Assembly: GCA_964187785.1 (NCBI GenBank)
Contig: OZ076415.1
Span: forward strand, 67,146,001-67,210,000
Length of the DNA: 64,000 nucleotides
Source of the DNA: Amphiscolops sp. MND2022
Lineage: Eukaryota
Direction of reading: 5' to 3'
Each line of letters starts with the position of its first letter. Within the stretch, counting starts at the first letter, position 1. Shown in pieces: positions 12,839-49,300 of the stretch. A model generated the notes under the pieces. The model searched no databases and was not told where the DNA came from. It was given only the letters and a program-made list of their open reading frames with translations. A program made the translations under genes and the position numbers.

Positions 12839-12869
12839 ACAGTATACTGCTAGGAATTTTCAAAAAACT

Positions 12870-13073: not shown

Positions 13074-13329
13074 ACAGCTTTGGATAGCTCTGCGTAAACC
13101 CTTGTACGCCCCTATGCCTTACGAATTGCTTCTCAACTCTACTCTGAGAACGGAGATTGATGTGAATTTCGTGCACGAGGACAACATGTTTTACCCGAAC
13201 GAGTATAAAAAGTTCCTCAAATCCACGGAGGGCAAGAAGCTCAAAAGGAAAGTGGAAAAACTCATTGGAATGAAGGAGAACAAAAGTTACTCAGGTTACC
13301 AAACGCCATTCAACTGTGTTTTGAGTTGA
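13074..13329 (+). CDS. Candidate host exon, product unknown
   Basis: Acceptor TTTTTCCAG at 13073, then open frame QLWIALRKPLYAPMPYELLL... to stop 13329. Confidence 0.35.
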
Positions 13330-13883: not shown

Positions 13884-14038
13884 CAGGTTGATCATACTCT
13901 GGACCATAAAAGTCTATGGTTCCAGGCTGACCATACTCTGGACCATACATGATTCCAGATTGATCATCGTAAGATTATAGTAAAAAATGTTATGATTCGC
14001 ATGGTACCATATATGATGATCAGAGTATGATCAACCTG
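13884..14038. mobile_element. MITE-like element, 18-bp perfect TIR
   Basis: CAGGTTGATCATACTCTG ... CAGAGTATGATCAACCTG, with internal repeats of CATACTCTGGACCATA. No clear TSD. Confidence 0.6.
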
Positions 14039-14964: not shown

Positions 14965-15073
14965 CAGGGGCGCAAAGTAGCACCAAGGATAAGAAACTCG
15001 GTGGTGTGAGTGGAAGCAAAACTGATGGTAAACAGCAGGATGAAGATTCTAAAAAAGCTCTGGGAAAAAAACG
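14965..15073 (+). CDS. Candidate host exon (Lys/Gly-rich)
   Basis: TAGCAG tandem acceptor, open frame GAQSSTKDKKLGG...KKR, canonical donor GTAAGT at 15074. Confidence 0.45.
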
Positions 15074-15638
15074 GTAAGTCCTTTCCGAGCCCACAACCAG
15101 TGTTGAACAGACACTATTATTGTAAAAAATGATATTGCACTTCAAAAACAGACAAAATTTTTCTGTCGCTCGCACGAGGACCTGTAGTTTTTCATTTTTA
15201 TTAAATTAATTTTTTAATGCACGTTTTATGAAAAATCAACCTTCATAGGCCTAAGATGCGTGAATAAAAATTTGACGTTCATCAGAAGACAAATTCCTTC
15301 GAAATGAGTAAGTTCTTCTAATAGAATAAAATTTTTCTTCATGACAGTTAGTAAAACAACCCAGAACTTAAAAGTTCATAATGGATACCATAATTTTGAT
15401 AATTACCTCAGTCGAGAGTGCTGGAACTTTTTACATGATGCAGGTCTGCATACAAGGAAGTTTTTCGTAAAGCCTAGAATTACTCGACAACCTAGGAAAA
15501 TAAAACCGGGAAAACCCTACGCTCCTTTAATTTTGGAAGCCTTAACACGTGATATGAAAAAGTATGAAACGCGGAATTTATGAATGGAGCTGATAGCAAA
15601 GAGTGTGAACTCCCAGTGTGAATTCTCTTGAAAGTCGT

Positions 15639-15845
15639 GATAAAATTTTGGCATTTTCGCGAAACCTTTGGTAAGAATGATGGCAAGATTTTTATCAAGA
15701 ACATCCAGACTATGTGCGATCTTGCAAGATTTTGCTAGCAGTTTCAAGAGAAATGCCACCAACTGTGAAAGAAAATGGACAAAAACCGTCGCTAGTATTA
15801 CTACATCAGCCGTTCTCGCTACCTACAAAGCTTTCAAGTCCTGAA
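15639..15845 (-). pseudogene. Coding-like segment paralogous to 34329-34555
   Basis: Roughly 70% nt identity by eye. The minus frame is open in both copies (LLKLLAKSCKIAHSL vs LLKLLTRSCKVVHIL). Confidence 0.45.
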
Positions 15846-17461
15846 TTTCAATGGTTTTTCATGTCATATGAACAACAAAGAATGAAAAATGAAAATTTAG
15901 TCGGTATTGCGAACAAAAGTAAAATAATTGTAAGCACAACTGTTGCTTCTTTTGCTAGTTAAACTTCGCTAAGACTCCTATCGGAGTAAACGGAAACATG
16001 CAAGAGCATGGAAGATCTTGGCAAGAACTTCAAGATATTTTGCACTGAGCTATCACCTTACGCATTTGAACAAAATGATTGGTAAGAAGCGGACCTTAAT
16101 TTTAACCAAAGTTATGTATGACTTAATAAATATCTTACCCCAAGCTAAAGGGTTTTTGAACCTACTCATGTCCATGCAATCACAGCGCCGAAATAAACTA
16201 TCTGTGGATAATCACTTAGAATTAATGGACTCTTGTTGAAACTGCTTGATTTCTTTTTGCATGTACTTTAATGTTGCCAGTACCTTTTATTATGGTTTTC
16301 TAAAACTCTCCAAAACTTTCAAGCGAAAACATATCCCAGTTGTATTCGACTTTAATCAAGCTGCTTGAAAGAATAATCAAAGTTTTGGCGGCAATTTTAT
16401 ACCTTGAACTTTTCAAGATTAACTACGAAGTTCTAATTTTAAAAGTAATTAAATTGCTATCCAATTAGGTAATTGTTCAATGCAAAACAACTTCAGTAGC
16501 GTAACAAACTGCAACAGAGCATCATGTTCAGCGAACTATTTGAGAAGCTGTAATGAATTGTTGAGAAAACAAAGTGTGAACAAAACGTGACCGTGTCGGT
16601 GATGAAGAGGAATTCATTTTCAAATTTAATTGCAATATTGGAAAATGCAGTGTAATTCTACAAAAATTACCACCAGAACTTACTGCATTTTCTAGGTTTT
16701 ATAAAATTTACCCTGCATGCTGGCCTGCAGCATATAAAGATTTCAAGCAGTCTCAACTAAGGGAATCAACAATTTTACAAACTTAAGAACTCTTTATCCA
16801 GAAATTTTTTAGGTTTCAATATTAAAGATTGCTTAAACTTTCAGCACCTTGCAAGACATTGAGAAACCACGCAAGCTGTGGACTTCCGATATGCTGTCTC
16901 TTTTAACCAGGAATGACTTGAAACAAAGATGTAATGAAGACACCCACAGGCCTATCAGAACGCAGTTATAAACAGCGGCTTATCCGTACGCCGCGATGAA
17001 AATTGTGTTGAACGGTTGGGCTTTTGAACGCTTGACCTTTTAGTTTGAAAGCGCTAAAAAAATTCATCCGTATTTTACTTCAAAAACTTTTCGGCTGTCA
17101 CTAAATGGTTTTTTATATTATCTTTTGAAAATCTTGGTTTTCAGTGCACGAAGTTTACAATCAGAAAGTTTGCTTGCCAACGCCGAATTTTTCTCTTTGA
17201 TAAATTTCGGGAACTCGTCATTTAGTTAGCTGAAAAAGCAACCGACAAATGTCGCCATAGTGGGTTTACAGGGATTGGAACAATGACAAGGCTCTGGAGG
17301 CAAATCTAATAATCTGATGAAACTGTTTTGTGAGCATATGTTCTAGAATGGCCAGGAGTAAGCTTATAATAGCGATGGCCAAAGCATAGCCGTTTTCGAC
17401 AACTACACTGGGTTTTCATTTTAAAAACTAGTTGTAATAATAAGCAATAATATAGCTTGAT

Positions 17462-25100: not shown

Positions 25101-26472
25101 TAATTGTAAATACCCCGTAGTGCAGCATGTGCATAAATCGAAAAACGTATAGTGTCGTATGATCGTTTGCTCAAATCCGCACAGAGACGCATAGTCACCA
25201 GCTGTAATCCGCATAGTTGTGTATAATCATTTGTTGAAATCCGCATAGTGACGCGTAGTCACCGGCTGGAATCCGCATAGTTATGTATAACCATTCAGGT
25301 AAAAGCGTAGTATGGTGAGGATTGTTTCATTTATTGGAGACTTTTGACCGACTTTCTCATGTGTTTCATATAACTCAGCCTTCACCGAGGTCCGTGATCA
25401 ATTTGGTGCTGGATTTCGATTGTATAATCAGTACGCCGTTTTTGTATATAGTCAATTACGAAACAATTTACCCGACAGTTTCCTCGGTAGCATTTCCGAT
25501 TGGGAGAAGTATTTGAGTATCGACCTGAGTCAACCCAATCTTCCCTTCAAGACTCCAGACGAGTTCATTCTGAATTCCGAATACCACAATCTCGTCAGTA
25601 CAAGCAAGCTTCCTAGGCCTGGTGTATTCGTTGAACAAACTATTTCGTTCTGCAAGGCATTCTGTGGGATATTGCTGTCCCACGAAATTATTAAATCCGA
25701 TCTAATTCGAGGGCTTGCATGTTTCGACTCTGCAGTTATGTTACATGGATCCGAGGACCAGTATGTTGCCGCCGTTGAGTGTCTCACTGGTCATTTCGTG
25801 GAGATTGGGTGGTTGAACCTCAGTGAGAAAACAAAATCGGTCAGCCAGTATCGATCACTTGTGTCAAAATTCCGGACTGTCAACATGGGACAAGTCGAGG
25901 ATTGGTTTCAATTCCTCGTCTCTCATTACGAATTGCAATGCCGGCCTGAGCTACATAAGCTATTCAAGCTATCTAGTTTGTGTCTTCCCCCGTTGGTAAA
26001 GATCCCAGCAGCCTTCGTAATCCCGATACCCGAGTTGGGTACTGTTGAGGAATCATTCCGATCTTGTATAGGGGCTATACAGCTTTCATACTCTACAGTG
26101 CCCAATGTCTCGAGCTTGTACCAGGATCCCCGCGCCATTTCAAGAGTCTTTCGTCTACTAGGAAGAGGGAAGGAGCTTCTGGAGGACCGAAAATTTTCCA
26201 TATGGAATTTTTTGAGAGGTAATGGAGCAAAAAGGTCAACTCTTTGCACCAAGTTTGAAAGTGCATACAAGCGTTCGGTTGTGGCTCCTGATGATAAGAA
26301 GCTACCAGATGACGGAGATATCACTTGTGGCAGTGGTCCCAGTACTAGTAACAATTCTCCATCTCCCCGCTCAGTTTTGGGAAAAGCTACTCTCTCTCTG
26401 ACTCGTTGTGCAGGTGACAATTCCGCTAACCAAAAAGCCAAGTCCAAAGGGACTAAAGGGAAGAAAGACTGA
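22121..26472 (+). pseudogene. Multi-exon antisense gene inside element 2: C2H2/BED-like zinc finger, hAT-transposase-like fold (tentative)
   Basis: Phase-consistent GT-AG joins: 22121-22217, 22501-23832, 23911-24395, 24480-24614, 24686-?; last long ORF ends 26472. ZnF CRVC-x16-H-x5-H. Frameshifts near 23163, 24250 and 25410. Confidence 0.75.
25173..25298 (+). repeat. 64-bp tandem duplication rich in ATCCGCATAG
   Basis: Units start at 25173 and 25237, each with two CCGCAYA motifs. Confidence 0.8.
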
Positions 26473-26666: not shown

Positions 26667-29600
26667 CTAGTATCTATAAGAGTCAGAAAAGTTTGGGTTG
26701 GGATTAGGTCGTAAGTTATATTTTTCACCACGAGTATTTATGGGTTCTTCTTGCAATGGGGTATTTTCTGAATTTTCTGGGGTTTTTTGGGTTTGCGTTT
26801 CTGGTGTATTTTCTTTTGAGGTTTTTTGGGAGATTTCTTATTCTTCATCTTGGATTTCTTGTAGATTTTCATCACAATTTTCTTCTCCGCGTTCAGTGGT
26901 CTGTTCCACTGGGCTCCCCCCACCATTTTTTGGAAATTTGGGGGAGGGAGGGTGGTTATTTTCAGGTACTTCAACGGGTACATATTCAATATCATCAGTA
27001 ATTTGTGTATAATCTGGAGGGCTTTCCTCAAATGGGTTAGGCCCAAAATTGGTGTTCCATGATTGGGCATATAAGTCATCATGTGCCACTGGCATTTGAT
27101 CATCTTTTTGCCAATCAGATTCTCGTACTAAAATATCGGCTAACGGTGCTTGCGGTGTGAATTTTCTCAACCTGATTCTATGTAAAAGTTGTGTTTTATT
27201 TGTTCCCAGTCTCCTAACTATATAATTGTTATTAGGAAGGACTTTTTCGACTTTGTAAGGACCCTGCCATCTGAATTCCCGAAATGGTATTTTTGTTGCT
27301 TGTGTGTCAGCTTTCGGGTTTAAAATATAGCAGTAGTCCGTTGTTTCTAACGGTGATGCTTTTGCTTTCCTATCATAATAGGCTTTGTATTTGAGATAGG
27401 ATTGCATTATGTTCTTTTTGGTCTGGTCTAAAAGTATTCTCATTCGTCGTTGTATTTCTTCTGCAACGTCAGTTTGGGGTTGGTATTTCGGATTAGGATT
27501 GTATCCTAACTTGTAATCCAGTATGTTGTGCGGGATGCGGCCATGAAAAACTCGTGAAGGCTCGCAACCAAGCGATGCATGATAGGTTGTGTTGTGGTTT
27601 AGTACTGCTAACGGGAGAAATTTATGCCAGTTATGTCGAAATTCTCCAGTTGCTGCTTTGAGTTGGGTTTTGACTGACGCATGTGTTCTTTCCAGAAGTC
27701 CTATTGTTTGAGCATGTTTCATTGTTGCATGTTTTAGCTCAACACCAAGGACAGCTGTAACATCATGGGTTACTTGAGCATTGAATTGTGTGCCAAGATC
27801 TGTGATGATTGTTGTTGGAAGGTATGTATGTTTGCATAATATGTCCATTATCACTCTGGCTACTGATGTTGCAGTGATGCGGGTCACTGGGTATGCAAAC
27901 AGGTATCGAGAGAAAACATCTATCGCTGTTATTATATGGTCATATCCACCACTGGGTGGTAGATTTGGTAGAATGTCCATTTGAAGAATGTCTTCAGTGC
28001 CGAGATCCCACTCTGGGCAATTAAGTAGTTCGGTCCTGAGGAGGTCATTATTGATCCTTTTGGTTTGTATGCAGGTTTGGCAATTACTCACCCATTTTTT
28101 AATGTATTTTGCAATACAAGGGTAGTAGTATTTCTGCCGTACTTCTTGTATCATCTTTGTGATACCCGGATGGTTTGAGTTATGACCGTGTAAGGCTTGA
28201 AGTAGTTCTTCTAGGAGCTGTGTTGGTAACAAAATCTGATAGTGCGAGGTGGTTCCTGTGTCGGTGTAGTACCTTCTCGTTAGAACCTCTTGCTTGATTT
28301 CGATTCTGGTTATGTTTTGGAGGTAATGCTGATATCTGTAATCAGATGCCAAGTCGTTTTCATCAAAGGGGTTTCCTTCTATTCTAGCTCTGAGGTTCCT
28401 AAGGACAATGTCATTGTTTTGTTCGAGTCTAATTCTGGCATTGTCTCGGAAATGCCCTTCAGAGCATGTGTTTAAGCCTGATGTCGGTTTGTGAAATTGT
28501 TGAAGTTCAGTGACATTGTTTTCTGGGTCATTGTGAGTCTCAGTTTGAGCTTGATTTCTCACGTTTTGCTTTTCTTCCCAAAGTTTGTTTTCGTCAAATT
28601 CATCATCGGGAAGGATGTAGATTTGTTCTTCTTCTACAATACCAGAAGATTGTATATTGACTTCTATCGCTTTGGTTTGGATATCGTTTCTTATGCTCAT
28701 TTCAAGTTTTTCAACTGGGTTGACTTCCGTTCTGGATAGGAAATCCGCCGCCGTATTCATTGAACCAGCAACATGGGCAATGACAAAATTGTATTGTAGG
28801 ACATAATCGCATGCGTTCCAAAGTGCTGGAGGAATGAGTTTTGCTTGAAAAAAGCGTGTTACAGATCTATTGTCGGTGAACACTATGACTGGAAAAGTGC
28901 TTCACCACATGAGGTGTCCAAATTCAACAAAAGCAAAGTATATGGAAAGGAATTCTTTCGCATAGATCGACAATTTTGTTTGTGTTGGGTTGAAGGTTTT
29001 CGAACCAAATGCTATGGGTGCATATGTTTTGCGTTTGGACTGGAGTTTTTGGCTGGGATCGTCTTCTATCATGATAGCATATCCTGCTGCTGTAAAGCTT
29101 GCATCAGACATGACTATGAGTTGTTTGTCTTTGAGAGGTTGTCTCAAGGCTAATTGGCAAGAGTTTTCGAGAAGTTTGTTTAGGTTGGAGAAGTCTTCCA
29201 CCAAGTTCGTGGGTACATAGAATTTGGAGGTTTCTTTGAGGAGTTTGAAGAACGGCAATAATCGTTCAGAAAGTCTCGGGATGTAATTGCGGTAATAGTT
29301 TAGGAATCCTATGTACCTTTGGAGTGCTTTTTTGGATTTGGGGAATCTCAATTTCGACAAAAAATCTTTGACTTTGTCGGCTTGAGGGGCCACGCCAACA
29401 GGTGTGATTGTGCGGCCTAGAAAATCTACTTGTTTGACACCGAAATGACATTTGGACATTGTGAGTTTTAGACCAGCATTTCGGATACATTCAAAGACCG
29501 TCCTGATGTTGGCGCATAACTGTTTTAAGTCATTTGCTGCTATACCAATGTCATCGACATACTGTGCACATTGGTCAGCTTTGATCGCCTTGTCAAGGTA

Positions 29601-31546
29601 CTCCCTCATGAAGCTAGAAAAAGCCGAGAGAGATCTGCTAAGGCCTTGAGCGAGTCGGCGATAAGCAAAGGTTCGGCTTGCAAAGTTGAAAGCAAGCATC
29701 TGAATGGATTGGTAGTCTGCCATTTGAAGGCAGTGGTAAGCTTGGGAGCAGTCTAATTTGCAGAAAAGTTTCTTGCCTGCCATGTGTTGTGCTGCATCCG
29801 ACAGTGTGCTTACCGGGTGGTTATTGTTGATGTAGTCTTCGGTGATTAAATTGTTGATTTTTCTGAGATCCACAAGTAGTCTGAGGCGTCCATTTGGTTT
29901 GCGTTGTGCAAAAATTGGACTAGCGTATTTTGAAAAAGGTAGGGTTGTTATGATTCCATATTTGTGTAGAAGTGCTAGTTCTACGGTAATGTCATCTTTG
30001 AGGTTGATTGGTGTTGGCAAACTTTGGCTGTAGGCTGGTCGATCATCGTTTGGTGTGAGTTTAACCTTGAATTCACGATTGGTGCCAATGTCGAATCGGT
30101 GTCTGGCAAAAATATCGTGAAATTCAATGAGGATTTCTTCAATTTGTTTCTGTTCTTCTTGGCTGAGCGTTGTGTCAGTCCAGTCGAAATTCGAGAGGAA
30201 AGCTTTTCTTGATTTTGCATCGTCTTGTGGGTTGAGTTGTTCAAGTTCTTTGAGCTCAAGGAGTTCATTGTATATTTGTTGTTGGATTGGGGTATACGTT
30301 GTAGGATCCCCTGGTTCTTCTGGTGTTGGGAACCAGTAAGATTCTTGTTCGGGGTTTTGTGAAGGAACTTTCAGTAGTTCATTTATGTAGATCTCGGTTG
30401 TTTCTTCATGTTGTATCATGAATGACAACATCGCTGGATCTACAGGTTGTATATGTTTGATTTGTTCTGGTGTGAGGATTTTGAAGTCTGCTAAATGGGT
30501 GTCATAAACTATTGTATATGGGAGTTCTGAAAAGTTGATTATTTGGTACCCGATGGCATTATTGTTGACCGTGCTAAGTGACGATGTGATGAAAATGCTG
30601 TCGTGGCTTTCGAATTGTGGTGAGGGTGTGACTATTCCTGTTGCATCGTGGTCTAACAGGTGGGGCATTCTGCTTGCTATGGCGAGGGTTTCACCTGGTT
30701 GAAGGGTGTATGTATTTTCAGCAAACAATGGTGTTGTTTGACGCATTGTTACTTGTGTGTCTGGTTTTAATTGCATTGAGAGGTATGGAAAAGTTAGGAT
30801 GCCTTGTGTGACATCAAAAACTGCATTGTTTCTGCGAAGGAAGCAGAGACCAATGAGTGGGTTTGGTAGGTTTTTCATGATGATGAAGTTTTCTCGTAAC
30901 ATGAAATCAGCCACTTCGAATTCAAGTAGTACTGTGCCGATTGGTACTTCTAGTTGACCATTGGCCACCATAATTTGGAAATTTGGCGGTGGGCCAGTAT
31001 CTTTTATTGCTTCATTTGCAATTAATTTGATTTTGTTAAGGTCCTGTTCGGAGATTGCACTAGTCAGGGCTCCTGTGTCAATGAGTCCGTCAAGTGTGAG
31101 TTTTTCGAAGTCCATTGGCATGTAGTACATGTGACGTTTTCGTTTCAATGTTAGCGAGGTTGACATAGGTAGGTATGACAGGTTGCGTTCCTGGTCAAAC
31201 TGGATGTGGTTTGTGAGATCTTCATCTAAAAGGGGTTGTTTTTGTTCATTGCAAGAGAAAGTACTCGGGTGATGAATTTCTGGTGAAATGTCTGTAGGTA
31301 CAGGGGGGTTTGAGTGTTGTCTGAAAAATACTTGTCAGGAGCATCTCTCATGAGTTCATAGTATGATTCCTGTGGGGGTTCATCGTTGTCGGGGTGATCG
31401 TGTGTTTGAGGTGTGTAGTCTGGTTCTGTAGTCAGTTGTTTAAGTTGTATGTTTATTGTATCCACTTGACGCTGCCAGTCGTCTTGTGGTTTGGTAGTTG
31501 TTATTTGGGCGTTTTGTTTGTTAAGGCGTGGCGTTTCTAGTTTAAA
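26667..31546 (-). pseudogene. pol: Pol of element 2 (PR-RT-RH-IN), nearly intact
   Basis: LIDTGA, LDCSQAY, YVDD, SDAS, HHCC, GPYKV. Entered by T TTA AAC at 31546-31540. 1-nt loss in a G6 run ~31303; stops at 28902 and 26838; terminal YNLRPNPNP motif. Confidence 0.93.
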
Positions 31547-33228
31547 TCCTTGGAAGAGGATTGTTGAGGTCGTTCTATTTTTGGTTTTATAGGTTTTCTA
31601 GCTTGTTTGTAAGCTTCGATAACCTTCTTTTGGGCTTCGGTGAGGTTCCACTTCGGTGGTCGGTTATCCATGTTGGCGCCGAAGTAGCCGTTTTCTTCCT
31701 CATGACCTGGTGTATTGCAGTTTTGGCATTTTTCTGCATCCGGGTCATCTTCAAGTTTACGCCGTTTTGCTAACTTGGGGCAGTCAGCCATCATATGACC
31801 TGTCTCCTTGCAGTAACGGCATTGGTCATTTTTAAGTGTCTTGTTGGGTACTGTTTTTGGAGTCTGAGCTTTAGACTTCTCATTTTGTTTTTTAGTTGGT
31901 TTTTCAGTATTTTGTTCTTTTTTGGTGACGGTCATTTGGGTCTTGACCGAGGTTTCGTCTGCTTCCAAACCATTTAGCTCCATCTCCCTCTCGAGATGTT
32001 TAACGATCTGGTCGTATGTGCCGTTCTCGAGATAGGCTTGGTTGATGGATTTTTTAAGGTGAGGGGGCATCTTTGCATAGAGTAGGTTCTCTATCATCTG
32101 GTGTGCGGTATCTCCGAAAGCTTTTTCAGCGCTTTCTTGGAGTTCTTCAAGGAAATCCGGTAATTTTTGGTTTTCGGGATCGAAGAAAAGTCTATTGAAT
32201 CGGTGCTTTGCTGAGGCACTGGATTCTGGTTTCACGTATTTTCTGCGAAAGACTTTTAGAATGTCTTCCAGTGTGGTAGATGGCGTTCTTTGTATGTTTT
32301 TGAATGTTTTTAATGCCAAACCTCTGAGGTGTGCGTGAAAGTGGTTAATTTTCATTTCCTCTGTTAGATTCGGCTGCATGCGAAGTGTTGTATGAAACAG
32401 GTCTTCAAAGTATTCAAATTTCTCGTTTTTCTCGTTTTTTCCATTGAATGTCAGTGTGTTTTTCGGGTGAAAAAGTGATTGTTGTGAGTTTTTATTGGCC
32501 AGTTTCTCGATTGCTTGTGCAATTTGATTAACTGGGTCAAGGGGTTTATTTGTCAATGTTGACGTTGTTTGATCTGCGTGGGATCCAACTGTATCATTTA
32601 AAGACTGAGGATTTTGGGAGCTTTGTCTATGGAGTTGTCTGTTGGTTCCTGTCACCATGTGATAATCCTCCTCCTCGGAGTCTCCTTCTGATATTATGGT
32701 TTCGTCTAAGTTCGGTTCATTTTGACAAAGTGGTCTAGCAGGATTCCTTAATTCTCTCATGTCAGAGGCTCTGAGGGGATGATCGTCCTCATTTTCAGTA
32801 TCTGATTTTTCTATGTTTGATGCGTGAACTCCATTAGACCTAATACTTTTGGATCCCGAAGGTTGAGAGTTTTGCATTTCATTAATTTCAGATCTGGGAT
32901 TTGTTATTGTTGATGTTGTTTTGGTTGTTCTTATTTCTTTCAAAATTGCATCAAATTTGTTCTCCATCTCTTCTCTCATTTTCATTATCCTGTCATTGTT
33001 CTTTTGTTCAAAGTTCTCTGTCCAAACTTGGATTTCGTTACTGATTTGACTAGGTTCTATCAGACTAGATCTGTTCTCGTTTTCACCTAAAGGTTCCTGA
33101 ATAACAGTACTAACATTAGTTAAAGTTTCATTACCTTGCATTGGCGTTTCTACTTGTGTTTCACTCAATTCTCGCTCAGGTGAAGGTGTTTCATGCCTTC
33201 TAGATCTTCTGTTTCTCTTATTTCCCAT
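31537..33228 (-). CDS. gag: Gag of element 2, starting inside the 5' LTR
   Basis: ATG 33228, open to stop 31537. Capsid-like region, CRYCKETGHMMADC knuckle and a second degenerate knuckle. Confidence 0.88.
   Translation of the reverse strand: MGNKRNRRSRRHETPSPERELSETQVETPMQGNETLTNVSTVIQEPLGENENRSSLIEPSQISNEIQVWTENFEQKNNDRIMKMREEMENKFDAILKEIRTTKTTSTITNPRSEINEMQNSQPSGSKSIRSNGVHASNIEKSDTENEDDHPLRASDMRELRNPARPLCQNEPNLDETIISEGDSEEEDYHMVTGTNRQLHRQSSQNPQSLNDTVGSHADQTTSTLTNKPLDPVNQIAQAIEKLANKNSQQSLFHPKNTLTFNGKNEKNEKFEYFEDLFHTTLRMQPNLTEEMKINHFHAHLRGLALKTFKNIQRTPSTTLEDILKVFRRKYVKPESSASAKHRFNRLFFDPENQKLPDFLEELQESAEKAFGDTAHQMIENLLYAKMPPHLKKSINQAYLENGTYDQIVKHLEREMELNGLEADETSVKTQMTVTKKEQNTEKPTKKQNEKSKAQTPKTVPNKTLKNDQCRYCKETGHMMADCPKLAKRRKLEDDPDAEKCQNCNTPGHEEENGYFGANMDNRPPKWNLTEAQKKVIEAYKQARKPIKPKIERPQQSSSKDLN
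32640..32657 (-). promoter_or_regulatory. Primer binding site of element 2 (inside gag coding sequence)
   Basis: TGGTGACAGGAACCAAC abuts the LTR end TCACA. tRNA not identified. Confidence 0.65.
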
Positions 33229-34281
33229 GGTTCTCAAGTGAAAATGTGTTGGGTTTGCTGGGGAAGAATTTGAATTCAGCTGAGATTTTCGACAAAACAA
33301 ATTGGAAAATGAGACAACTGTTGAATATGAGAAACTGCTTTTACAACGGTTTGGAGTGTGGGTTTTATCAACTGTTTTCAGCGAGAGTTATTTCAAAGAA
33401 TGATTGGGGTTTAAGGTCCTGAGCACAAGGAAAAAATGGTGGGGATTACACCCGTTTTTATGGGTGTCATGGTCTTCATATTCTATAAAAAGGATTACAT
33501 CATGTGTCGTAATTCTATTTATAACTCTAAATATACGTTGCATGACAAGCAGAAACAAGTATTGTACAGCTACAGCAAAAACCCTGGAAAACTGCATAAT
33601 GACGTATATACGGTCTTAAATTTCCGCATACCAACGAATAATCACAATGCAATAATGATATAACACCGTATGATGGGAAACGCGGAAAACCGCATATTGA
33701 CGTATAAGCGCCGGCGATTTTCCGCATAGTGACGTGTAAATATCACTGTGACAATGTATCAAGGAAATTACTGTTTTCCGCATGGTGCCGCATAAGCGGT
33801 GGTTAAAATCCGCACATTGCAGTATATGCGTTAGAAATTTTCCGTATGATGGTGTATAATTGTTAATCACAAACAGCATGATGAAGTGTATTCATTTTCA
33901 CATTTCCGTACTGTGACGCATACTCATTGATTTGAAAAGTCACGTTTAGATTAATCATTGCTTCCATTCAGAGATTATGGCCTAAGTTCAACTAAACAAC
34001 TCAATATTTCAAGCAAAATTAGGGTGAAAAGTTAAGAAAGCTTGGTCAACATGCCTTAATTCGCATCTGGCTTCCACAATTCCACCAAAGAAACTATAAA
34101 ATAAATATTTACATGACTTAATTCGTTGGTTAGGGTAAACAACGAGACAATAAAAGCAAAGAAATAAAGGGGGAAGGCAGTTTATTGAGTTTCATCAAAT
34201 TGAGTTTGTCTTTCAGGCTGCTTCTCTGTTTTCCTTTTTACTCTTGCAGAACAGGCCCAGAGCACCCATGAGGCTGCGACA
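32658..34281 (-). repeat. 5' LTR of element 2
   Basis: Copy of 18149-19773, followed by the PBS and flanked by the TSD. Confidence 0.95.
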
Positions 34282-34938: not shown

Positions 34939-35599
34939 TATATATTTGATGGATTTGATTTCCATATTTGCAACTCTTCAAGAGTCATTCCTGGGGGTGA
35001 TCAGAAACTGGGGGAAAGATTCTCAGGGATACCCGGTTGAAGATGACGACAACTTCCCGGAAAATGTGAGCGACATGCAACTGCTGAAAGTGCTCAAAAT
35101 GAATTACATTGCTTGCGACGAGGAATGCCAAACTATCTCGTATTTGCGTGTGCAGTCTGAAATTCGGACACTTCGATAAAGTTTCGTGAACCAAATAACA
35201 CGTTGTCGAGATACGTTTGCTGAACAATTTAGCTGAAAGTCATCAATCGTAATTTGAAGTCGTCTTTTATATGATTTCAATGACATTGTTCTGTAAAGTA
35301 ACGCCTACTGTTGACGCAGCAGATACTGAAAGACGTTTTATATTCAAAAATTCTAATATTGAGTTCACTGATTATGATATCGCACCAATTAAAGACACGT
35401 GCTTCTCATTGATGTTGTAAATTTGTTCACTCATGTAATCTGAATCATTCCTTTCTTCTTTCTTCACACTGTTCAGGCGCTGTAACTCTACTAAAAATAA
35501 AAGTCATCAGACTAATCACTTTTGCTCTCCCAAAAACGAAGACAATCACGACATTAATTGGTGCCACTGCACCCCGGGAAGAACCGAATCAGCAACAAA

Positions 35600-38500
35600 A
35601 TGACTTCCTATGAAGGGAAAACGCTTCAGCAACTCAAGCGCTTTCGTTCAGCGATCACAGGCGTGATAACCAAGACGCTGACAAAGACGCAACCAATTCT
35701 TGCCAAGGACAAAAACGACGTGACACCAGATGAGATTGCTGATTTGGAAGTCAGGCAAGCACTCTTCGAGCAGAAACTAAGTGAAGCTGAGCTTCTCAAC
35801 GCAGCAATTTTGGAGCAAACCCCAGACGCAGACGACGAGGTACAGGAAGAACTCATCAATGCCAGTGAGTTTCATTGTAACATATCTTTTGAGCTTAAAA
35901 GGATAGTGAAATTTCTCGAGCAATTCGTTGAACCTGGTCCCAGTCTTGAAAATGCTCCTGCTGCGGCAAGTGCGTCAGCCAATTGTGCAAGTAGTCTCAA
36001 AATGCCAAAATTCAGCTTGCCAAATTTTGACGGACAATATCAAAACTGGACGCCATTCTATGAACAATTCATGGCTTCGGTGGATAGTTCCAAAACTCTG
36101 CCAGACATTCAGAAATTCAACTACCTCAAATCTTCTCTTGTGGGCGAAGCTTCACAACTCATTTCATACCTACCTTTGTCAAATACAAATTACAAGATAG
36201 CGCTGAAAATTTTGATTGACCACTACGATAATCAGCGACTCATTGTGAACACCCATTTGGCAACCATTTTCAATTTGAAACCTCTACAAAGCGAATCAGC
36301 ATCACAATTACGAAAGCTCATAGTTGCATTCGAAGAAAATTTGATGGCCATTCAGGCTTTAAAGCTGGACGTTACTTCAAGTGATTTTGTTTGGGTTCAC
36401 GTTTTGACCAAAAAACTAGATCCAGAATCCAGGTGGCAATTTGAACTGGATCATCCAGGAAAGGAACTCCAGACGCTACAGCAACTAACGGACTTCATAA
36501 ATAGGCGAGTTCAAGCTTTGGAAGTCTCAGATACACGCAATTATTGAGTGAAAAATGATAAAATCAGTGCTATAACAGAACGCACTTCAAAGCAGAATTT
36601 CCAGAATTCAATCACACAGAATTATAAAGCCAAGTTTGAAAAATGCTCCGTATGTTCGGCAGATCACAAAATTTTCAAGTGTGAAAAATTCAAAACGTTG
36701 GATTTCAAGGCAAAGAAAGCTCTTGTTTTCAATTCCAAATTGTATTTCAATTGCCTCCAAGCAGGTCATCTTACAAAGGATTGTGAATCCAAAAGCACTT
36801 GCAAGGTTTGCAATGGTAAACATAATTCCTTGCTTCACAATGAAAATGCTGGTACACACATTGAAAGTACTAGCACACTTGTCTCCGGACAAGCATTGAT
36901 TCCATCTAATATTGGCATCTTACCAACAGCTATGGTTTCTATAGAAGATGACTCAAGCAATGTCATCAAATGTCGTGCTCTTCTAGACAGTGGCTCTCAA
37001 ATGAGTCTCATATCGGAAGAAGCAGTGCAACGAATGAAGTTGAAGCGTCAAAAACAATCACTCACTGTCAATGGGATTGGCAATGTTCACAGGACATACA
37101 ACTCTGGAAAGGTTCTGTTGAAACTGAAATCTAAAACAGGAAAACCGTTAGAAGTCCAGGCTTTCATTCTTCCAAATTTGACTCAGCATTTACCAAATAG
37201 GTCTTTCAAAACTACAGGCTGGCTGCAAATGAAAACAGTTGAGCTAGCGGATCCTCATTTCAATGAGAGGAAACCAATTGATTCAATTCTCGGAGCAGAC
37301 GTATTCGCGGAAATTATTTTGGATGGTTCTTTCAAAGAAGGAAATGGACTACACTTCCGTAATTCCATTTTTGGATGGATCGCATCGGGCAACCAACCCA
37401 ATCAAGAATCGTCTAGTGTTACAACTTCACTTTGCATAAATGAAACTTTCGATTTAAAAAAGTTTTAGGGAATAGAAGAAATTCCGAAAGCAAATCAATG
37501 GACAAATGAAGAACTTGCCTGTGAAAAACATTTCCAGGAAACAACTCAAATTGTTGAAAATCGATTTCAAGTATCAATGCCTTTCAAACCAGACGCTCGA
37601 CCTTTGGGGGATACATATGTCCAAGCCAAACGCCGTTTTCTCAGTTTGGAAAAAAGGTTAGAAGGTAACTCTAGCCTGAAACAACGTTATACAGACTTCA
37701 TTAACGAGTTCATTTCACTACAACATCTGGAACCTGTTCCAGATGCCGAAATTGACAAGACAGACCGTCAAGTGAACTTTCTACCACATCACTGTGTTCA
37801 CAAGGAGGATTCAACAACAACGAAACTGAGAGTTGTCTTTGATGGATCTGCAAAATCAACATCTGGTAATTCTCTCAACAGTTCCTTGATGATCGGGCCG
37901 ACGGTCCAAGAAGACATTTTCTCGATTCTCATAAGATTCAGATTCCATAAAATTGCTCTTTCTGCGGATATTGCAAAAATGTATAGGCAAGTCTCATTGG
38001 ATAAGGCCGGGAAAGATTTCCATCGGACTACTTGGGCGGGATTCCGCAACAAAACCGATCCAGCAGTATCGTATGACACGATGTATCTATGGAATAGCAT
38101 CTTCAGCCTTTCATTGTACTCGTGCAGTGAAGGAAATTGGAGATTCATGTGCTGACAAAGAACTCGGACACTCCATCAAGACAGATTTCTACGTTGATGA
38201 CTACCTGTCTGGAGCCAATTCCATCACAGAAGCTAGAACGAAGATAACAAAGGTTTGTGATGAACTCCAGAAGTATGGAATGCAGCTTCGTAAATGGGCC
38301 TCAAGTCATCACGAAATTACCACAGAACTGCCTGCGGAGCTCCGCGAAAACGTGGACATTGCAATAGTAATGCATGAAGACTACAAAATCGAAACGTTGG
38401 GAATTTCGTGGAAACCCAACACAGACAAATTCTACTTCAATACAGATTTTGCAGAGCGAAACAAGCTGACAAAGCGAGAGCTCCTCTCAATAACGACGAG

Positions 38501-40757
38501 ACTCTTCGATCCAATTGGTTTGTTTGGACCCATTGTAATTAGATTCAAGATACTACTGCAGAAAATTTGGGTTCTTGGGATCAGTTGGGATAAAACTTTG
38601 CCATCGGAGATCCAAGTGCAATGGAATCAGATGAAAACGGACTTGAAAAGTTTTAGAGATTTCTCGTTGAATCGATGCATAGTTCCCCCAACGAAAATTC
38701 AAACCGTACAACTGCATTTGTTCTCAGATGCATCGGAGCAGGCATACGCAGCTGTAATCTATGCGAGGATGGAGGAAACGAATGGTTTCGTCACTATGAA
38801 CCTCATGACAGGAAAGAATAGAGTGGCACCCATCAAAACAGTATCTCTTCCGCGTTTGGAATTGTGTGGTGCTCATTTGGGAGTCAAACTTTTGTCCAGG
38901 GTTGAAAAAATTCTCAAACTGACAAGTCTACCACACCAAGAAGTCTTTGGTTGGACCGATTCCACGATTGTGCTTCAATGGCTGGCACAACTTCCACGAA
39001 CTTGGACAACATTCGTAGCTAATCGAGTGTCTGAAGTGCAACAAATATTGCCGAGAGCAAATTGGAATCACGTTTCTTCATCGAGCAACCCCGCTGATTG
39101 TTCATCACGAGGAGCAAGGCTGGAAGTTCTTCAATCCTCCAGTCTGTGGTGGAATGGACCCGAATGGCTAAAAAAATCGCAAGATTCTTGGCCAAAATCC
39201 AAATTACAATTAGCTGAACCAATTGAAGTGAGACTCAAAAATGCAAAAATCACTGCATCATCAATTTCACTCACAGTCACACAATCGACATTGCTTTTCC
39301 GACATGATCGATACTCGAGTTTTTCCAAACTTATTCGGGTAGTCGCAACAGTTTTCATCGCCATGGAGAAGCTCAAGAGAGTCAACCGTTCATCTGATGT
39401 AACTGCGGCAGACATAACATCTGCAAAACGGAAAATACTAAAAGAGCATCAGATCGACTACTATGCAACTGAGTATCACACACTGGAAGCAGGGAAAGAG
39501 CTGTCAAAACAAAGTAAAATTCTCAATCTGAATCCATTCTTTGATGACGAAAGCAAGATCATCAGAGTGGGTGGACGCTTGTCTCAAGGCCAATTCAGAG
39601 AGCTGAAGAAATTTCCACTGTTAGTCAGTCAAGATTCAAAACTTGCGGTTCTCATTCTTCAACATTTTCATGAAGCTACGCTTCATGGTGGGGCGGAGCT
39701 GACTGTGAACTCCAGTCGAGAAGAATTTTGGTATCCAAATTCCAAGGTCCTGGTGAAAAAAGTGATCAAAGAATGCGTCAAGTGCAGTCGCTTCGAAAAC
39801 AAAATACCCTATCAACTCATGGCCGACTTGCCGTCTGAAAGGATAACACCGGCAAAACCCTTCGAAATATGTGGTTTGGATTTGGCAGGGCCAATATATA
39901 CTAAACCAGGAGTAAAAACGTACATAGCTATTTTTGTTTGCTTCGTAATCAAAGCAGTTCACATTGAATTAGTAACAGATCTAACGAAGGATTCATGTGT
40001 TTTGGCTATTCGGAGATTTATTTCCAGACGCGGCATACCTAGAAAAATTCTCAGTGACAATGGAAAGAACTTCATTGGAGCTAGCAATGATATCATGAAA
40101 ATACAAGAAATTCTCGCAAGGGAGAACAACAAAAATTCAGTTAGAAGTTTCATGGCGCAAGAAACAATTAAATGGGAAATGATTCCGCCCAGGTCACCGC
40201 ATTTTGGAGGATTATGGGAAGCTTCAGTGAAAAGTATGAAGCGTCACCTCCGCAGAGTCGTAGGTCTTCAAGTCCTTTCATTTGAAGAGCTGAATACATT
40301 GGTAATTGAAATAGAAGGAATTCTAAATTCCCGACCTTTGTCTGCAATGTCCAGTGACCCAAACGACCTTCAGCTGATTACCCCAGCACATTTTCTTCTA
40401 GGTAAACCGGCAAAAGATATACCTACAGTTCGTGAATGTGATGCGAAAATCAACTTTGGACAGAGATTCAAGTTACTCGAAGCATCTAAGCGATCATTTT
40501 GGACGTCAGGGTATCGAGATTACGTGGTAACCCTTCAGATACGCAAAAGATGGCTTCAATCGGGCCCTAGCTTCCAACAAGGTGATCTTGTCTTAGTGGC
40601 AGAAGACAACATGCCCCCCTTGCGATGGAAAATGGCAAGAATTGAGCAGTTGTACTCTGGCAACGATAACATAAACAGAGTTGCGAAACTCAAAACTGCA
40701 GTTGGTCAAATAATAAGACCTGTAGTCAAGCTCAGGAAGCTTCCTATTGAATCCTGA
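35600..40757 (+). pseudogene. pol: BEL/Pao gag-pol polyprotein, disrupted
   Basis: FDGQYQNW gag motif, three Cys/His knuckles, LLDSGS, YVDDYLSG, FSDASEQAY, integrase with SPHFGGLWE. Stops at 36545 and 37466; frameshift ~38025. Confidence 0.93.
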
Positions 40758-41425
40758 TATGGTTTCTTGAAGCAAATCGTACCTTGAAACACTTTAATAA
40801 TCGTATTTGTTGGCATTTGTCGTTCTACCGACAAAAAGTTGACCGAAGTTCTTCGCATCCCCTTTTGAGATTATCCATAGCAGCGCTCTGGGACTTACTT
40901 TAAACTGTACAGGAGACTCTCTGCTACAACTTCTAGGAACCCGAATTTTTAATTTCGGATTTTATCTTATTTTCTGAACCCTCAAAGTTATCACCTATTA
41001 CCCTATCTTCAGTACTATTGAGTAGCTACAAAATTATTTTCATGTTTAAAAGTTATTGAAGAGGTCATATAAACGAACAAACGTAACAGAAATCAACCTG
41101 AAACAGAATGGAGCGTGACTAACACTGTGAATGACTCGGCAGCAAAAAGATTGGATCAATTGATAAACCGCAACGTACTGGTTCGAATGAATCAGGTAGT
41201 TCATGCGTCGACAGCGTACTATTCCATTAAGGTTTTGTTCAATTTCTGAATACCTTACTACAATTCACTCAGTCATTCGATTTATTCACGTGAGCTGGCA
41301 CACTGTTGACTGCTATGGTCATCAAAAAATCAAACGTTATTCAATGAACGAAAGTAATTTCTGAAGATCAAATTTTCCTTGATTATTACAAAAAAAAGTT
41401 CCGGTAAAATGAAATTATCATTTGG

Positions 41426-42711
41426 TTAGTCGCTGGTGGCATTCCAAATTTCTACCCAAGCAGCAACAGGGAGTTCTTCATCATCAGAATCGAGATCAGT
41501 CAACGTTGGACAATCTTGACGTCCGCTTTCTGATACTGATTGACCAAAGTTAGCCAATCGTCGATTCTTCAAGGACTTTCTTTTCAAGCGTTTGATCGAA
41601 CTCAAACTCTCTTTCAAGTTATATTCATAGCGATGGAAGGCTTCAAGGTGCTCCACCATCTCTTTTCTAACAAGGAATGCCCTGACAGTCTTGGATTCCG
41701 AACAGACTGCAGACGTTTCGGACGATTTTTCCTGCACATTTTTCTTCCAATCAGACAACGCTTTTCTCCAGTACTTTATTCTGAGAAGCTTAATTAGACG
41801 ACCCAAGGACATCTGCTCAAGCCACTGCAGGAAAAAGCCCCGTTTGACGCCGCTGGAAAACCGATCTATTACCAAACTTCCACGAAGATGGTCAGACACA
41901 TTCAAACCCTCCCAGCCGTGCACAAGAGACCAACTAGTGCTTCCATCGGCAGCCGATGTGCGACCAGTCAGAACACAATGTGCAAAACAAGGAGGTTGAA
42001 TCAGAAGGTCACCAGGTTTCGCCAAATGATAACCGAGACCACGACAGAGCTTTTCATCATTACCATACTTTGCTCGGTCCATCAATAAATGATGAAAGTC
42101 TTTGAATGTTGTATCCCATATAGAAAACGAGAAAATTCAATATTGGAAGCAATGAGCCAGAGTTTTCGCCCGGACTCCAGCTTAGCAACACTTTCGGCCC
42201 CTGCGCTTTCTATATGGCCACTGGTGAACCAAGGATCCTTTATTGCTAAAAGAGCCTTGGAATCAACTGAAATGTAAGAAGGCGCGTCGACGCGTACACA
42301 GTCATCACTAAGTTCGAACGAGACTGTTCGACTACCTTCAAAACCTTTGTTATCCAAACATGAACTGGTAGCGTGGACAACAGCATCAAATCTATTTTTG
42401 ACTGATTCGAACAAAACATGGCCATGATTCCAGAAAGCTTTCGCTTGAGGACTCAAGTCGCACAGAGTGTCAGCAAGAGGTCCACGGAAGACAGTTGGAA
42501 TGCTTGGAAAATTACTCACCCAATTCAGAGCATTAAAAAGCACCAAAACAGGAAGTATTCCCCGAGCCTTCCAATTTCTGCCATCATTTTCCTCAGCCTC
42601 GAAGAAAATGTCTTCTACATCATTTTCAGCGGCAACAAATTGCGACGCAGACTGACCGTCAACACTTTCCCCAGCAAGAAGACTCATGGCAGTTTCTGAA
42701 AAAAAATTCAT
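41426..42711 (-). CDS. Antisense JmjC-like Fe(II)/2-OG dioxygenase inside the BEL element (one frameshift at 42082-42085)
   Basis: WFTSGHIESAG...GRKLWLI and KPGDLLIQPPCFAHCVLT. H-x-E...H triad (His at 42214-42216 and 41978-41980), Thr at -3 and Lys at +17 from the first His, as in KDM2/7-type JmjC. Confidence 0.75.
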
Positions 42712-43003
42712 TGAAGCCACTTGCTTCAAGGGGAGCGGAATGTTGACGGTCAGTCTGATACTGAAAGACGTTTTATATTCAAAAATTCTAATATTGAGTT
42801 CATTGATTATGATATCGCACCAATTAAAGACACGTGCTTCTCATTGATGTTGTAAATTTGTTCACTCATGTAAACTGAATCATTCCTTTCTTCTTTCTTC
42901 ACACTGTTCAGTTGCTGTAACTCTACTAAAAATAAAAGTCATCAGACTAATCACTTTTGCTCTCCCAAAAACAAAGACAATCACGACACCTACTAACTGG
43001 TGT

Positions 43004-46395: not shown

Positions 46396-49300
46396 TATAT
46401 AGAATTCATAGCTGTTTCGAAGCTAGAAACAAGTTTCTCAATATGTATGAACGACTTCTCCAGTCAGAAGAATATGAACGACTTCTCCAGTCTTTTTTTG
46501 TATTCCAACGGGAGAAAATCATTAACTTCTGATGTTTTTGTAAATCACTTTTGTGTTTACTTCTCTGAATACGGTTGAATTGATACTACCAACTCTTCGT
46601 CTCACTCAGCCTCAAAAGTCAAGAGGTTATGCGGCCTTAACCAATCATCTGAAACTAAGGTTGCTGTCAACTTTCGATGAGAAGTCACTTGTAAAAGATT
46701 AACTGAAAAATGAAGTGAATGATGGCAAGCAGAAGCGAGAAGTAAGAACTCAAGCAGAAAAATCTTTTTTTGCCAGTGAACCGCTACTCCATGCAGTCAG
46801 AAATCAACTTTCAGAGATGAGAAGCTAGTGTTTATTCAAAACTCAGACTCAAACTTTATTGATGCCTTTGTAAATTTTCTTGCTGTTTTTCCTAGGCTGA
46901 GTAGAGTTGAGTTTGATGTTGAGCGAGAGTACACATAGATAAGACAACTTTTTGAAATTTCTCGGAAGATTCCAAAAACACTTTGAAGATATATCCAGGC
47001 TTGACAAAAAATCTCAGAGACAATTTTTCTGGCAGACGTTTCGATAGCATTTCTTTGTTTTGGTTGATGTCCAAAGTGCACGTCGCTATGCACTGCATAG
47101 CATGACAAGAAATAGGGAATTTTCTGAGCTTAGTTTTGCTTCAAAACGCCTGTCATTCATGTTTTTTGTAAATACGTTGTTTTTACGATCCAGAGATACG
47201 CCGTTTTATGTGAAACGATCGAAGCAACATTCTCGCAAGTTCAAGAAGCACAAGCTCAGGTTCCAAAGGCTTGGAAATTTCAGTGTCTTTTACAAAACTC
47301 AGACATAAAATGACTAATTCTACTGTACAGTCTAGGTTAGAAACCTCGTTGTTTTCGAGACAAGACGAGGACTTTGAATACTTTGCTGAACGTTTTTAAG
47401 CTAAGCTTCATTTATTAAAATTGAGCACAGTCCTTCTTGGTCAGGAGAATTTACATGAGGAAACATGCGAATTTCACTACTGAGCAAAACAAGTTGAAAG
47501 AAAAACGGTTCGAAGTTTGGTGTGAACTGCTGCATTGTCTAGATAGGAAGTCATTGAGTTTAGTGAAAACAGCGAAACCTAACGGCATACAGGCTTTGGA
47601 AACTTTGGCAAGACTGTTTTAAAACTCGTGAACCTTCTCGTATCCATCAAACTTCAACTAAGTTGACGAACCTTAGAATGAACTCACAAGAAATTATGCG
47701 CGATTATTTGATGAGAGCTGAAGAACTTCAGCTCAATCTATCCGATGTTCGAGAAAACGTTAGTAATCAAATACTATGTTCGGTAGTCTTAGAAGGTTTG
47801 CCCAACAGTTTTGCAAGTTTCGTAACTGTTTTCAATTTTTTGCATTTAAGTTAAAACATTTGCTAACCTAACACGTGGTCTTTAGAAATTCGATAGTATT
47901 AGTTGCCAAGGTCAAACTGACCAAGGAACAAGTTCACATTTCACTAAAGACGTGAAGTGCTTCAAGTTCGGTAAAATTGGCCACCGACAAATATGAACGC
48001 AGAGCAAAAGTGTCTGCCATAGTGTGTTACGAATGTGGTGGAAAAGGCCCTAAAGCGAATGAGTGCCCCAAAAAGACAAATAGATCGAAAACAAGAGAAG
48101 CGCGTGAGACAAACGCTTTTACACGAAGCGAAACGAGATTGATCTAACAGCTGAAAAACAATTTTTTTCGTTTCATACTAGCCAAGCACATTTGACGTGT
48201 AAGAACATAGAACGTTTGTTAGACAACGGCTGTAGGAGTCACATGATAAAGGACGCTGAATTGTTCCGCGACTCGGACGTTTCGCGAATGGATAAAGTTC
48301 AATGTGAGAACGGAACTGAATCCAGTCCAGTATTGAGGTAGAGGATCCGTTCAATTTTTGGCAAAAGACAACCAAGGGGCCAAGATCAAATCTTGGAACT
48401 TGACGAATCGTTGTATGTTCCCCAATACACAAAAAAACTTAGTTTCGATCAAGAAACTGAACGAACAAAATGAGAGCGTTCATTTTGATGCAAACCGTCG
48501 CATAGTTCAGGATGATAGATGTTTTCCGTTAAAGTGCGAACATAACCTGTTTTGTTTGCAAGTTCATTGTTTGCATGGGCAAAGCAATGCCCCGACTGCA
48601 AGTCTTCAACTATGGCATGAAAGACTTGCTCACAATAACAAAATTGATGTTCGAAATTTGGCAAAGGCTGTAGTCGCTATGAAGTTAGTAGTTGAAGGAA
48701 ACGAATCTTGCGATGTGTGTAACACAGAAAAAGCCAAACGGTTACCGATACCCCGTCAAATAGCAGCTCGAGCTAAAAAACAATCAGACATATTTCACGT
48801 AGATTTACCGCCAGTGAACACGACGTCGATAAACATTTTTAAGCACGCTCTAGGATTCGTTGGTAGCTTCAGCAGACTCGGTGCTGTTTATCTACTAAGA
48901 ACAAGAGCCGAAGTCGGAACGAAGCTTTTGAGGTTCGAAGCTGAGATTGGAAATGATGCTAAAGAGTTCAAATTTGGAAATTTCGTCGACATTTGTACAA
49001 AGCAAAAAATTCATCAGGAATTTATTTGTGAATACAAACCAGAACAAAACAATACAATAAAACGTGTTTGGGGAACCATCGGGACGATGGCTAGTTGCCT
49101 GTTGAAAACGGCAGGCTTACCTGATTTTTTTTGTTTGCTTACCGAGCAGTTTTTCATATAAAAAACCGATGCTGTCACTCTGCTCATGGCACAATACTGT
49201 TTGAGAAGTTTTTTAAAAAGACACCAGATGTGACGCATTTTTGGGTATCAAGTTTTCATGTACTTAGAAAAACCAAAGCGAAGCAAGTCTGAACAACACT

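Follow-up and report, generated by a model that had tools for sequence, protein, structure and literature searches.

What does an LTR retrotransposon keep on the strand opposite to its own polyprotein, and what could such a gene do for the element that carries it? The common view casts transposons as passive objects of chromatin silencing, and to our knowledge only a few of them carry enzymes or factors acting on epigenetic marks, namely DNA methyltransferases (DNMTs), TET/JBP, AlkB and VANC. The question is raised by a stretch of 64,000 nucleotides from Amphiscolops sp. MND2022 (contig OZ076415.1, positions 67,146,001 to 67,210,000; hereafter the window), in which a BEL/Pao long terminal repeat (LTR) retrotransposon holds an antisense gene that an initial annotation, made from the sequence alone, had likened to JmjC dioxygenases. 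We found that this JmjC-like cargo is real and under selection, and that it is common to BEL/Pao and Ty3/gypsy elements, not BEL/Pao-specific. Its identity as a selected, element-borne dioxygenase with a JmjC fold we consider probable. For its role the most far-reaching account, to which we assign a probability of roughly 0.3, is as follows: a private, highly divergent JmjC histone demethylase would be carried, and apparently exchanged, by LTR retrotransposons of at least two superfamilies (BEL/Pao and Ty3/gypsy), expressed antisense and stripping marks of the histone H3 lysine 9 or lysine 27 (H3K9/H3K27) type from their own chromatin.

The gene lies between the integrase stop (40757) and the polypurine tract, as two minus-strand open reading frames (ORFs) of 215 amino acids (aa) (42729..42082) and 219 aa (42085..41426), exactly where the initial annotation had placed two abutting frames; the second is open upstream as far as 42133, which gives an overlap of about 50 nt between the two. 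No plus-strand ORF longer than 102 aa was found over this stretch. The annotation had further joined the two ORFs by one nucleotide at 42082-42085 into a protein of ~430 aa. They are indeed one gene with a single frame break, of ~420 aa, but the break lies ~25 nt upstream of that junction, at ~42108, the sole place within the gene where a frame-changing length difference to the sister copies L003 and L004 occurs (loci fetched for comparison are numbered L, family proteins P). The region of the break is read straight through by the junction-spanning relatives P0004 and P0007 and by an intact sibling of 420 aa, P0153, whose start coincides with the window ATG at 42687. The parts of the gene are as follows.

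42082..42729, minus strand: 5' piece of the antisense JmjC-like gene, likely ATG at 42687-42685, 91% identical to P0153 residues 1-198
42225-42223, 42216-42214, 42210-42208 and 42165-42163, minus strand: key codons of the 5' piece for Thr, His, Glu and Lys, respectively
42100..42110, minus strand: single frame break, at ~42108, located by DNA alignment with L003 and L004
41426..42133, minus strand: 3' piece of the gene, stop codon at 41428-41426, 94% identical to P0153 residues 194-420
41980-41978, minus strand: codon of the predicted distal Fe-binding His in the 3' piece, which also encodes a helical C-terminal region and a basic KNRRLAN motif (41569-41549)

Both sequence motifs on which the JmjC proposal had been built were recovered, FTSGHIESAG...SGRKLWLI in the first piece and KPGDLLIQPPCFAHCVLT in the second. 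Judged by sequence comparison, the ORF pair goes far beyond chance, with relatives matching as strongly as E 1e-136. As for the window copy, it is a pseudogene, though the least damaged among the fetched genomic copies of its subfamily, L003-L005 having several indels apiece.

The gene resides in a BEL/Pao LTR retrotransposon of complete structure (35309-42988), and the LTRs and target-site duplication reported around the ORFs were confirmed, as was the type of the element.

35304..35308, no strand: target-site duplication CCTAC, 5' copy, read directly from the sequence; the same pentamer stands at 42989-42993
35309..35553, plus strand: 5' LTR of 245 bp with TG...CA ends, from the blastn self-match to 42741-42988 and repeat family D1
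35559..35578, plus strand: primer-binding-site-like sequence, TGG-initiated, 5 nt past the LTR, read directly
35558..36547, plus strand: gag (DUF1759, Pfam E 4e-34), closed by an in-frame stop at 36545-36547 ahead of the protease
36548..37468, plus strand: aspartyl protease segment (Pfam Asp_protease_2, RVP and DUF1758; frame check), closed by a second in-frame stop at 37466-37468
37469..40757, plus strand: reverse transcriptase, RNase H and integrase of BEL/Pao type (Pfam), with a frame change inside 37935-38155
40758..41425, no strand: non-coding spacer from the integrase stop to the stop of the antisense gene, with a minus-strand AATAAA at 41286-41281 (motif scan)
42728..42740, plus strand: polypurine tract abutting the 3' LTR, read directly; its complement is part of the 5' leader of the antisense gene
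42741..42988, plus strand: 3' LTR of 248 bp, from the blastn self-match, repeat search and direct reading
42989..42993, no strand: target-site duplication CCTAC, 3' copy, read directly

The Pfam order on the plus strand (DUF1759, aspartyl protease, Peptidase_A17 with E 1.5e-50, Integrase_H2C2, rve and DUF5641 with E 1.7e-24) is that of a gag-protease-reverse transcriptase-RNase H-integrase polyprotein with BEL/Pao-specific domains, and the TG...CA LTRs, short duplication, primer-binding site and polypurine tract are those of an LTR retrotransposon. In the window the pol frames overlap (37469-38152 and 37935-40754), and in the sister copy L005 the ORFs matching gag and protease join without a gap between them. 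The two in-frame stops and the frameshift in gag-pol, together with an LTR divergence of ~3.6% (96.4% identity over 248 columns in the blastn self-comparison), show that this copy is now dead.

Is the product a JmjC enzyme? The window gene was searched as two separate pieces, and AlphaFold2 was run on natural intact relatives only. Models of P0010, which is ~50% identical to the window gene, and of P0153, both built with the family alignment, reached predicted local distance difference test values (pLDDT) of 87.7 and 89.4 and predicted template-modelling scores (pTM) of 0.86 and 0.88, respectively. Both adopt the double-stranded β-helix (cupin) fold and consist of this barrel, an N-terminal α/β region and C-terminal helices only. 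For both models the Foldseek top 50 in the PDB are JmjC enzymes throughout (best E 3e-8 to 6e-8, probability 1.00), including KDM7A, PHF2, ceKDM7A, PHF8, KDM4, KDM5B, JMJ13, TYW5, FIH, JMJD5 and JMJD6, which bears out the JmjC or cupin fold that the annotation had predicted; matches to viral proteins were weaker and fell on cupin or JmjC proteins of giant viruses. At the sequence level, a family profile from 71 members (A3) matched only PHF8, KDM7 and PHF2 among 177,635 PDB sequences, at a marginal best E of 7e-4, and hmmsearch with a second alignment of 80 members (A5) returned the same top matches at E 0.04. The likeness to the KDM2/KDM7 pattern proposed from the sequence reappears among solved structures, at this marginal strength. 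In the A3-PHF8 alignment, T-x-x-H-x-E of the family stands against T-x-x-H-x-D, the Lys of G-x-K against Lys, and H-A-V-L-T against H-A-V-L-T.

The predicted active site can be followed residue by residue. In the window the first two triad residues are encoded by the H-I-E codons of the first piece (42216-42208) and the distal His by the second piece, at a spacing of ~79 residues in P0153, and the triad aligns with that of PHF8. Thr at -3 and Lys at +17 relative to the first His likewise align with the matching PHF8 positions, which we take to be its contacts to 2-oxoglutarate (2OG). The corresponding residues of P0153 are Thr155, His158, Glu160, Lys175 and His237. Over the 71 members, Thr was found in 50/59 (plus Ser in 7), the first His in 56/59, Glu in 55/60 (plus Asp in 2), Lys in 57/62 and the distal His in 66/67, so that the iron triad and both flanking residues named by the annotation are conserved family-wide. 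From these models and alignments the antisense product is predicted to be a divergent member of the JmjC-fold Fe(II)/2OG dioxygenases whose active site appears competent. An unlikely alternative keeps the fold and drops the chemistry: the protein might act non-catalytically, e.g., as a chromatin-binding anti-silencing scaffold of the kind proposed for fission-yeast Epe1. PMC7192584 and PMC6624913 report non-enzymatic anti-silencing functions for that JmjC protein, and the catalytic activity of the present family is a prediction from sequence; retention of each of the five ligand positions in 85-99% of diverse members is, however, what selection on catalysis would yield.

The predicted dioxygenase belongs to a sizeable family. 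Its profile, run against 1.84 billion representative proteins, retrieved 112 clusters (at 50% identity) at E<=1e-3; these include full-length ORFs of 358-500 aa, and intact ORFs of 358-432 aa are present in many lineages. Members came from ENA, Logan or JGI assemblies, with the nearest relatives in ERZ25074608, and none bears a functional name from any of these sources, one being tagged merely 'hypothetical protein'. Within the window, a search with 152 family proteins found no further copies.

The gene is shared by several carriers. It stands antisense between BEL/Pao pol and the 3' LTR in L003, L004 and L005 (85-94% identical) and in L002 (42%), the pol of the latter being only ~57% identical. 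In two Ty3/gypsy carriers, L009 and L011, the members P0062 and P0095 are enclosed by LTR pairs of 99.7% identity, and the antisense JmjC-like gene lies between pol and a sense ORF3 of 701-870 aa. P0017 adjoins a related gypsy pol in L007, from another sample. The same layout, i.e., an accessory ORF within the element, on the opposite strand and between pol and the 3' LTR, was found in the window, in L002-L005, and in L009 and L011.

In BEL/Pao carriers a 21-nt motif, composed of the LTR terminus and the complement of the polypurine tract, lies directly upstream of the gene and forms the start of its antisense leader. It occurs at the following sites.

42721-42741, minus strand: window
9619-9639: L001
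9339-9359: L002
2657-2677: L003
10045-10065: L005
246-266: L006
10-30: L012

The motif is exact in most loci, although the antisense proteins of those BEL/Pao lineages are only 42-55% identical. In L001 it carries one mismatch and shows the locus to be a truncated element; a host locus, considered for L001, was ruled out by this LTR edge and polypurine motif upstream of the gene. Beside the element remnants run satellite arrays, with a 748-bp unit in L001 (13462-20452), where the called genes have stray Ribosomal_S5_C matches, and a unit of ~1,457 bp in L004 (1-8020). L002 contains a 756-bp direct repeat (9088-9843 and 16675-17400) that spans a 256-bp LTR and the purine tract and reaches ~500 bp into the antisense gene. 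As this repeat covers the N-terminal part of the gene, that part was considered to lie inside the LTR; the idea was rejected, since by the conserved LTR-edge and polypurine motif the LTR is 256 bp long and a truncated upstream copy comes after it, sharing this LTR with the full element in a partial tandem arrangement.

In a maximum-likelihood tree rooted at the midpoint, the members linked to BEL/Pao form one clade (support 100/99). Gypsy-linked members appear at two separate places, yet their pols are ~53% identical. The tree hints at module exchange between carriers; with few labelled tips and a midpoint root, no direction was drawn from it.

In L009 (6986-9091, minus strand, 701 aa) and L011 (6556-9168, minus strand, 870 aa), the ORF3 proteins share 49% identity and have no Pfam match. 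ORF3 and the antisense gene are divergent, separated by ~0.8-0.9 kb, a gap that could hold a bidirectional internal promoter.

Could the window gene instead be a one-off capture of a host JmjC fragment, or a chance open frame, decaying neutrally? The frame breaks in the window copy and in its close sisters L003-L005 would fit such a history. Against it stand the intact sibling P0153 and the 112 clusters, and the recurrence of the gene at the same position in BEL/Pao lineages with distant pols and in Ty3/gypsy elements with nearly identical LTRs; absence from sister copies, named in the annotation as grounds for giving up the proposal, is not what we see. Ratios of non-synonymous to synonymous substitution rates (dN/dS) were computed by the Nei-Gojobori method on tblastn-anchored codons, which excludes broken stretches by construction. 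Against L003-L005 they were 0.27-0.57 for the antisense gene, and in these copies gag, protease and pol gave 0.29-0.71; comparison of the antisense gene with the divergent L002 gave ~0.2, with synonymous divergence (dS) saturated. Post-insertion decay raises all these values alike. By these ratios the antisense gene is under purifying selection comparable to that on gag and pol; neutral evolution, the other outcome that would have counted against the proposal, is at odds with values well below 1. Because long intact ORFs persist in lineages only 20-50% identical and the ligands are conserved, a neutral one-off capture is ruled out; it is already contradicted, and we regard it as very improbable.

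How the gene would be expressed can be sketched from the window element. The antisense mRNA would start within the 3' LTR or at its edge, and this LTR contains one candidate promoter element:

42771..42777, minus strand: TATAAAA in the 3' LTR, a consensus match ~85-90 nt upstream of the likely ATG

The transcript may end at the AATAAA at 41286-41281, a consensus match 142 nt past the stop. A palindromic CACGTG (E-box) is present in the LTRs of two BEL/Pao lineages (window ~42830-42835, L006 ~163-168), with ACGTG similarly placed in L002; it could serve a promoter of either strand. Two short contigs were considered as transcripts and rejected: L006 (2.4 kb, encoding intact P0010) has its first nucleotide roughly an LTR length ahead of the gene, and L012 (1.4 kb, intact P0121) begins inside the LTR, right at the TATA-like motif, and has no poly(A) tail; both appear to be breaks in a genomic assembly.

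Once made, the protein would enter the nucleus, as suggested by a conserved basic K/R-K-N-R-R-L-A-N tail that recurs, together with an acidic C-terminus, in distant family members. There it might oxidise histone methyl-lysine as do KDM7 and PHF8, its nearest sequence relatives, and, more speculatively but in the reading that we favour, remove repressive marks from the chromatin of the element itself and so counter host silencing. Taken alone, this step of histone demethylation with an anti-silencing effect appears to us somewhat doubtful.

Almost as likely as the demethylase role is that the same element-borne JmjC-fold dioxygenase hydroxylates a non-histone protein or RNA, as FIH, JMJD5, JMJD6 and TYW5 do, its target being a host factor, Gag or Pol of the element, or a tRNA; we hold this to be possible, at a similarly low level of confidence. 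It draws on the Foldseek ranking for the subfamily of the window, P0153 matching TYW5 and FIH best (E 3e-8 to 2e-7) and KDM7 equally well or less well, and it fits a family in which no histone-reader domain was found. The sequence profile points the other way, as KDM7, PHF8 and PHF2 are the only matches among solved structures and share even the typical H-A-V-L-T strand, and so does the basic tail with the nuclear location it suggests. The H-x-E of the family in place of H-x-D does not speak for a hydroxylase either, as it is common in lysine demethylases.

Several further observations weigh against the reading of the gene as a JmjC-fold dioxygenase of LTR elements and against the role sketched for it. 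No Pfam JmjC or Cupin_8 match was obtained in the window pieces (E<=1), in four relatives (E<=10) or in ten full-length relatives (E<=1); the latter ten have no Pfam domain of any kind, and the lone trace in these scans is a 2OG-FeII_Oxy_5 match in P0022 at E 0.19. The JmjC assignment consequently rests on the profile-to-PDB search and the fold. The E values of that search are marginal and differ with the alignment, A3 or A5, though they are consistent in what they match, and the Foldseek TM-scores are modest, at 0.3-0.55. Since the Foldseek matches mix demethylases with hydroxylases, the structure search on these models does not separate the two classes. Domains of the reader type (PHD, chromo or Tudor), with which KDM7 and PHF8 find histones, were not found in the family. 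Some members lie outside recognisable LTR elements, in L008 and L010. The short contigs L006 and L012 give no transcript support, looking like genomic fragments broken at the LTR and not like cDNAs. Finally, in the Ty3/gypsy carriers the sense ORF3 stands between the gene and the 3' LTR; an LTR promoter is for this reason no general rule, and the promoter in gypsy carriers would have to be internal.

The two loci outside LTR elements differ in context. In L008 the intact member P0015 is placed between two direct repeats of 5,068 bp (2264-7331 and 11807-16864), 99% identical and carrying a PIF1-helicase fragment; the interval also holds a GIY-YIG/T5orf172 ORF and short tandem repeats. In L010 (82-1074, 8682-9128), P0044 abuts an ORF of 1446 aa that includes a C2H2 finger and a segment resembling endonuclease VII, and an adenovirus-type (adenain-like) protease, Peptidase_C5, is found 7.6 kb away. 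These neighbours suggest a Polinton/Maverick-like or viral context, not an LTR element.

If the demethylase account holds, it would describe an enzymatic counter-defence against silencing based on PIWI-interacting RNAs (piRNAs) or heterochromatin, missed by annotation since no sequence model detects the family. With a selected JmjC enzyme in BEL/Pao and Ty3/gypsy elements, the short list of element-borne epigenetic factors would gain an activity that oxidises histones or proteins, and there would be a candidate enzymatic anti-silencing factor open to direct testing: the young intact carriers L009 and L011 and the intact sibling P0153 supply natural sequences for expression and assay. The family is also an example of how more than 100 clusters can escape Pfam and public naming and yet be recognised by structure prediction.

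Retroelement copies make up much of the annotated part of the window. A Ty3/gypsy-like element at 901-10417 (plus strand), GC-richer (0.47-0.51) and with several sense ORFs after the integrase, contains no JmjC-like gene; two of its ORFs (8195-9109 and 9455-10417) are distant homologues, at 22-30% identity, of the sense ORF3 in L009 and L011. Antisense to a second Ty3/gypsy element (26841-33387, minus strand), and just 3' of it, an open frame of 374 codons (25348-26469, plus strand) has no Pfam match and does not recur in the fetched loci. It was considered as a second member of the JmjC-like family and rejected (hhalign probability 0.1); it may be an antisense accessory ORF of another kind. 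Another open frame (48337-49158, plus strand) matches gag_pre-integrs weakly and probably represents a Ty1/copia-type fragment. Neither tRNA nor Rfam matches were found within the 64-kb window.

Compared with KDM7, PHF8 and PHF2, the family shares the JmjC β-helix, a helical domain after the barrel, and Thr(-3), His-x-acid, Lys(+17) and the distal His in H-A-V-L-T, which align residue for residue. It differs in being only 10-15% identical to them, in H-x-E against their H-x-D, in its total length of ~420 aa without a PHD finger or other reader, and in being encoded by a mobile element and not by a host gene. Despite the JmjC fold and active-site pattern, it is therefore to be filed as a divergent JmjC-fold family and not as a member of KDM2/7, because it matches no curated model and none of the KDM2/7 reader or targeting modules (PHD, CXXC, F-box/LRR) was found by Pfam in the ten full-length members or in the AlphaFold2 models. 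To TYW5, FIH, JMJD5 and JMJD6 the structural similarity is equal, slightly stronger for P0153, and these proteins are likewise small, single-domain and readerless. Unlike the KDM7 group, they gave no sequence-profile match to the family in the PDB search, and their substrates (tRNA wybutosine; protein Asn, Arg or Lys) are not known to be linked to retrotransposons. The JmjC protein Epe1 of Schizosaccharomyces pombe, which opposes heterochromatin marked by H3K9 methylation (papers cited above), plays the role that we propose for the family; it is, however, a host gene product recruited by HP1/Swi6, and what it shares with the family is the fold.

In its layout the gene resembles known antisense genes. 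HBZ of human T-cell leukaemia virus type 1 (HTLV-1) is transcribed from the 3' LTR. The antisense additional ORFs (aORFs) of plant LTR retrotransposons occupy the strand opposite to pol, in the stretch between it and the 3' LTR (PMC7264820). The family gene likewise runs on the opposite strand in the interval from pol to the 3' LTR; in contrast, the products of aORFs and HBZ are non-enzymatic or of unknown function, none being reported as a JmjC enzyme, and in the Ty3/gypsy carriers the gene is internal and divergent from the sense ORF3.

With respect to cargo, the nearest parallels are epigenetic factors in other mobile elements. TET/JBP proteins occur in fungal KDZ elements, and VANC is encoded by VANDAL. 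Dinoflagellate and charophyte retrotransposons carry DNMTs (PMC5890265), and an orchid Ty3/gypsy carries an AlkB N6-methyladenosine (m6A)-demethylase domain (PMC9289625). JmjC is mentioned neither in PMC5890265 nor in a review of accessory domains (PMC6338049). In agreement with the initial annotation, which knew of no JmjC cargo in BEL/Pao elements, the literature searched yielded no account of a JmjC gene carried by BEL/Pao or other LTR retrotransposons, Repbase and most subscription journals lying outside the coverage. Like AlkB and TET/JBP, the family would represent Fe/2OG dioxygenases housed in mobile elements; it differs from the DNMT, AlkB, TET/JBP and VANC cargoes in being of the JmjC class, in its BEL/Pao and Ty3/gypsy carriers and in forming a separate antisense gene, as opposed to a domain fused to pol.

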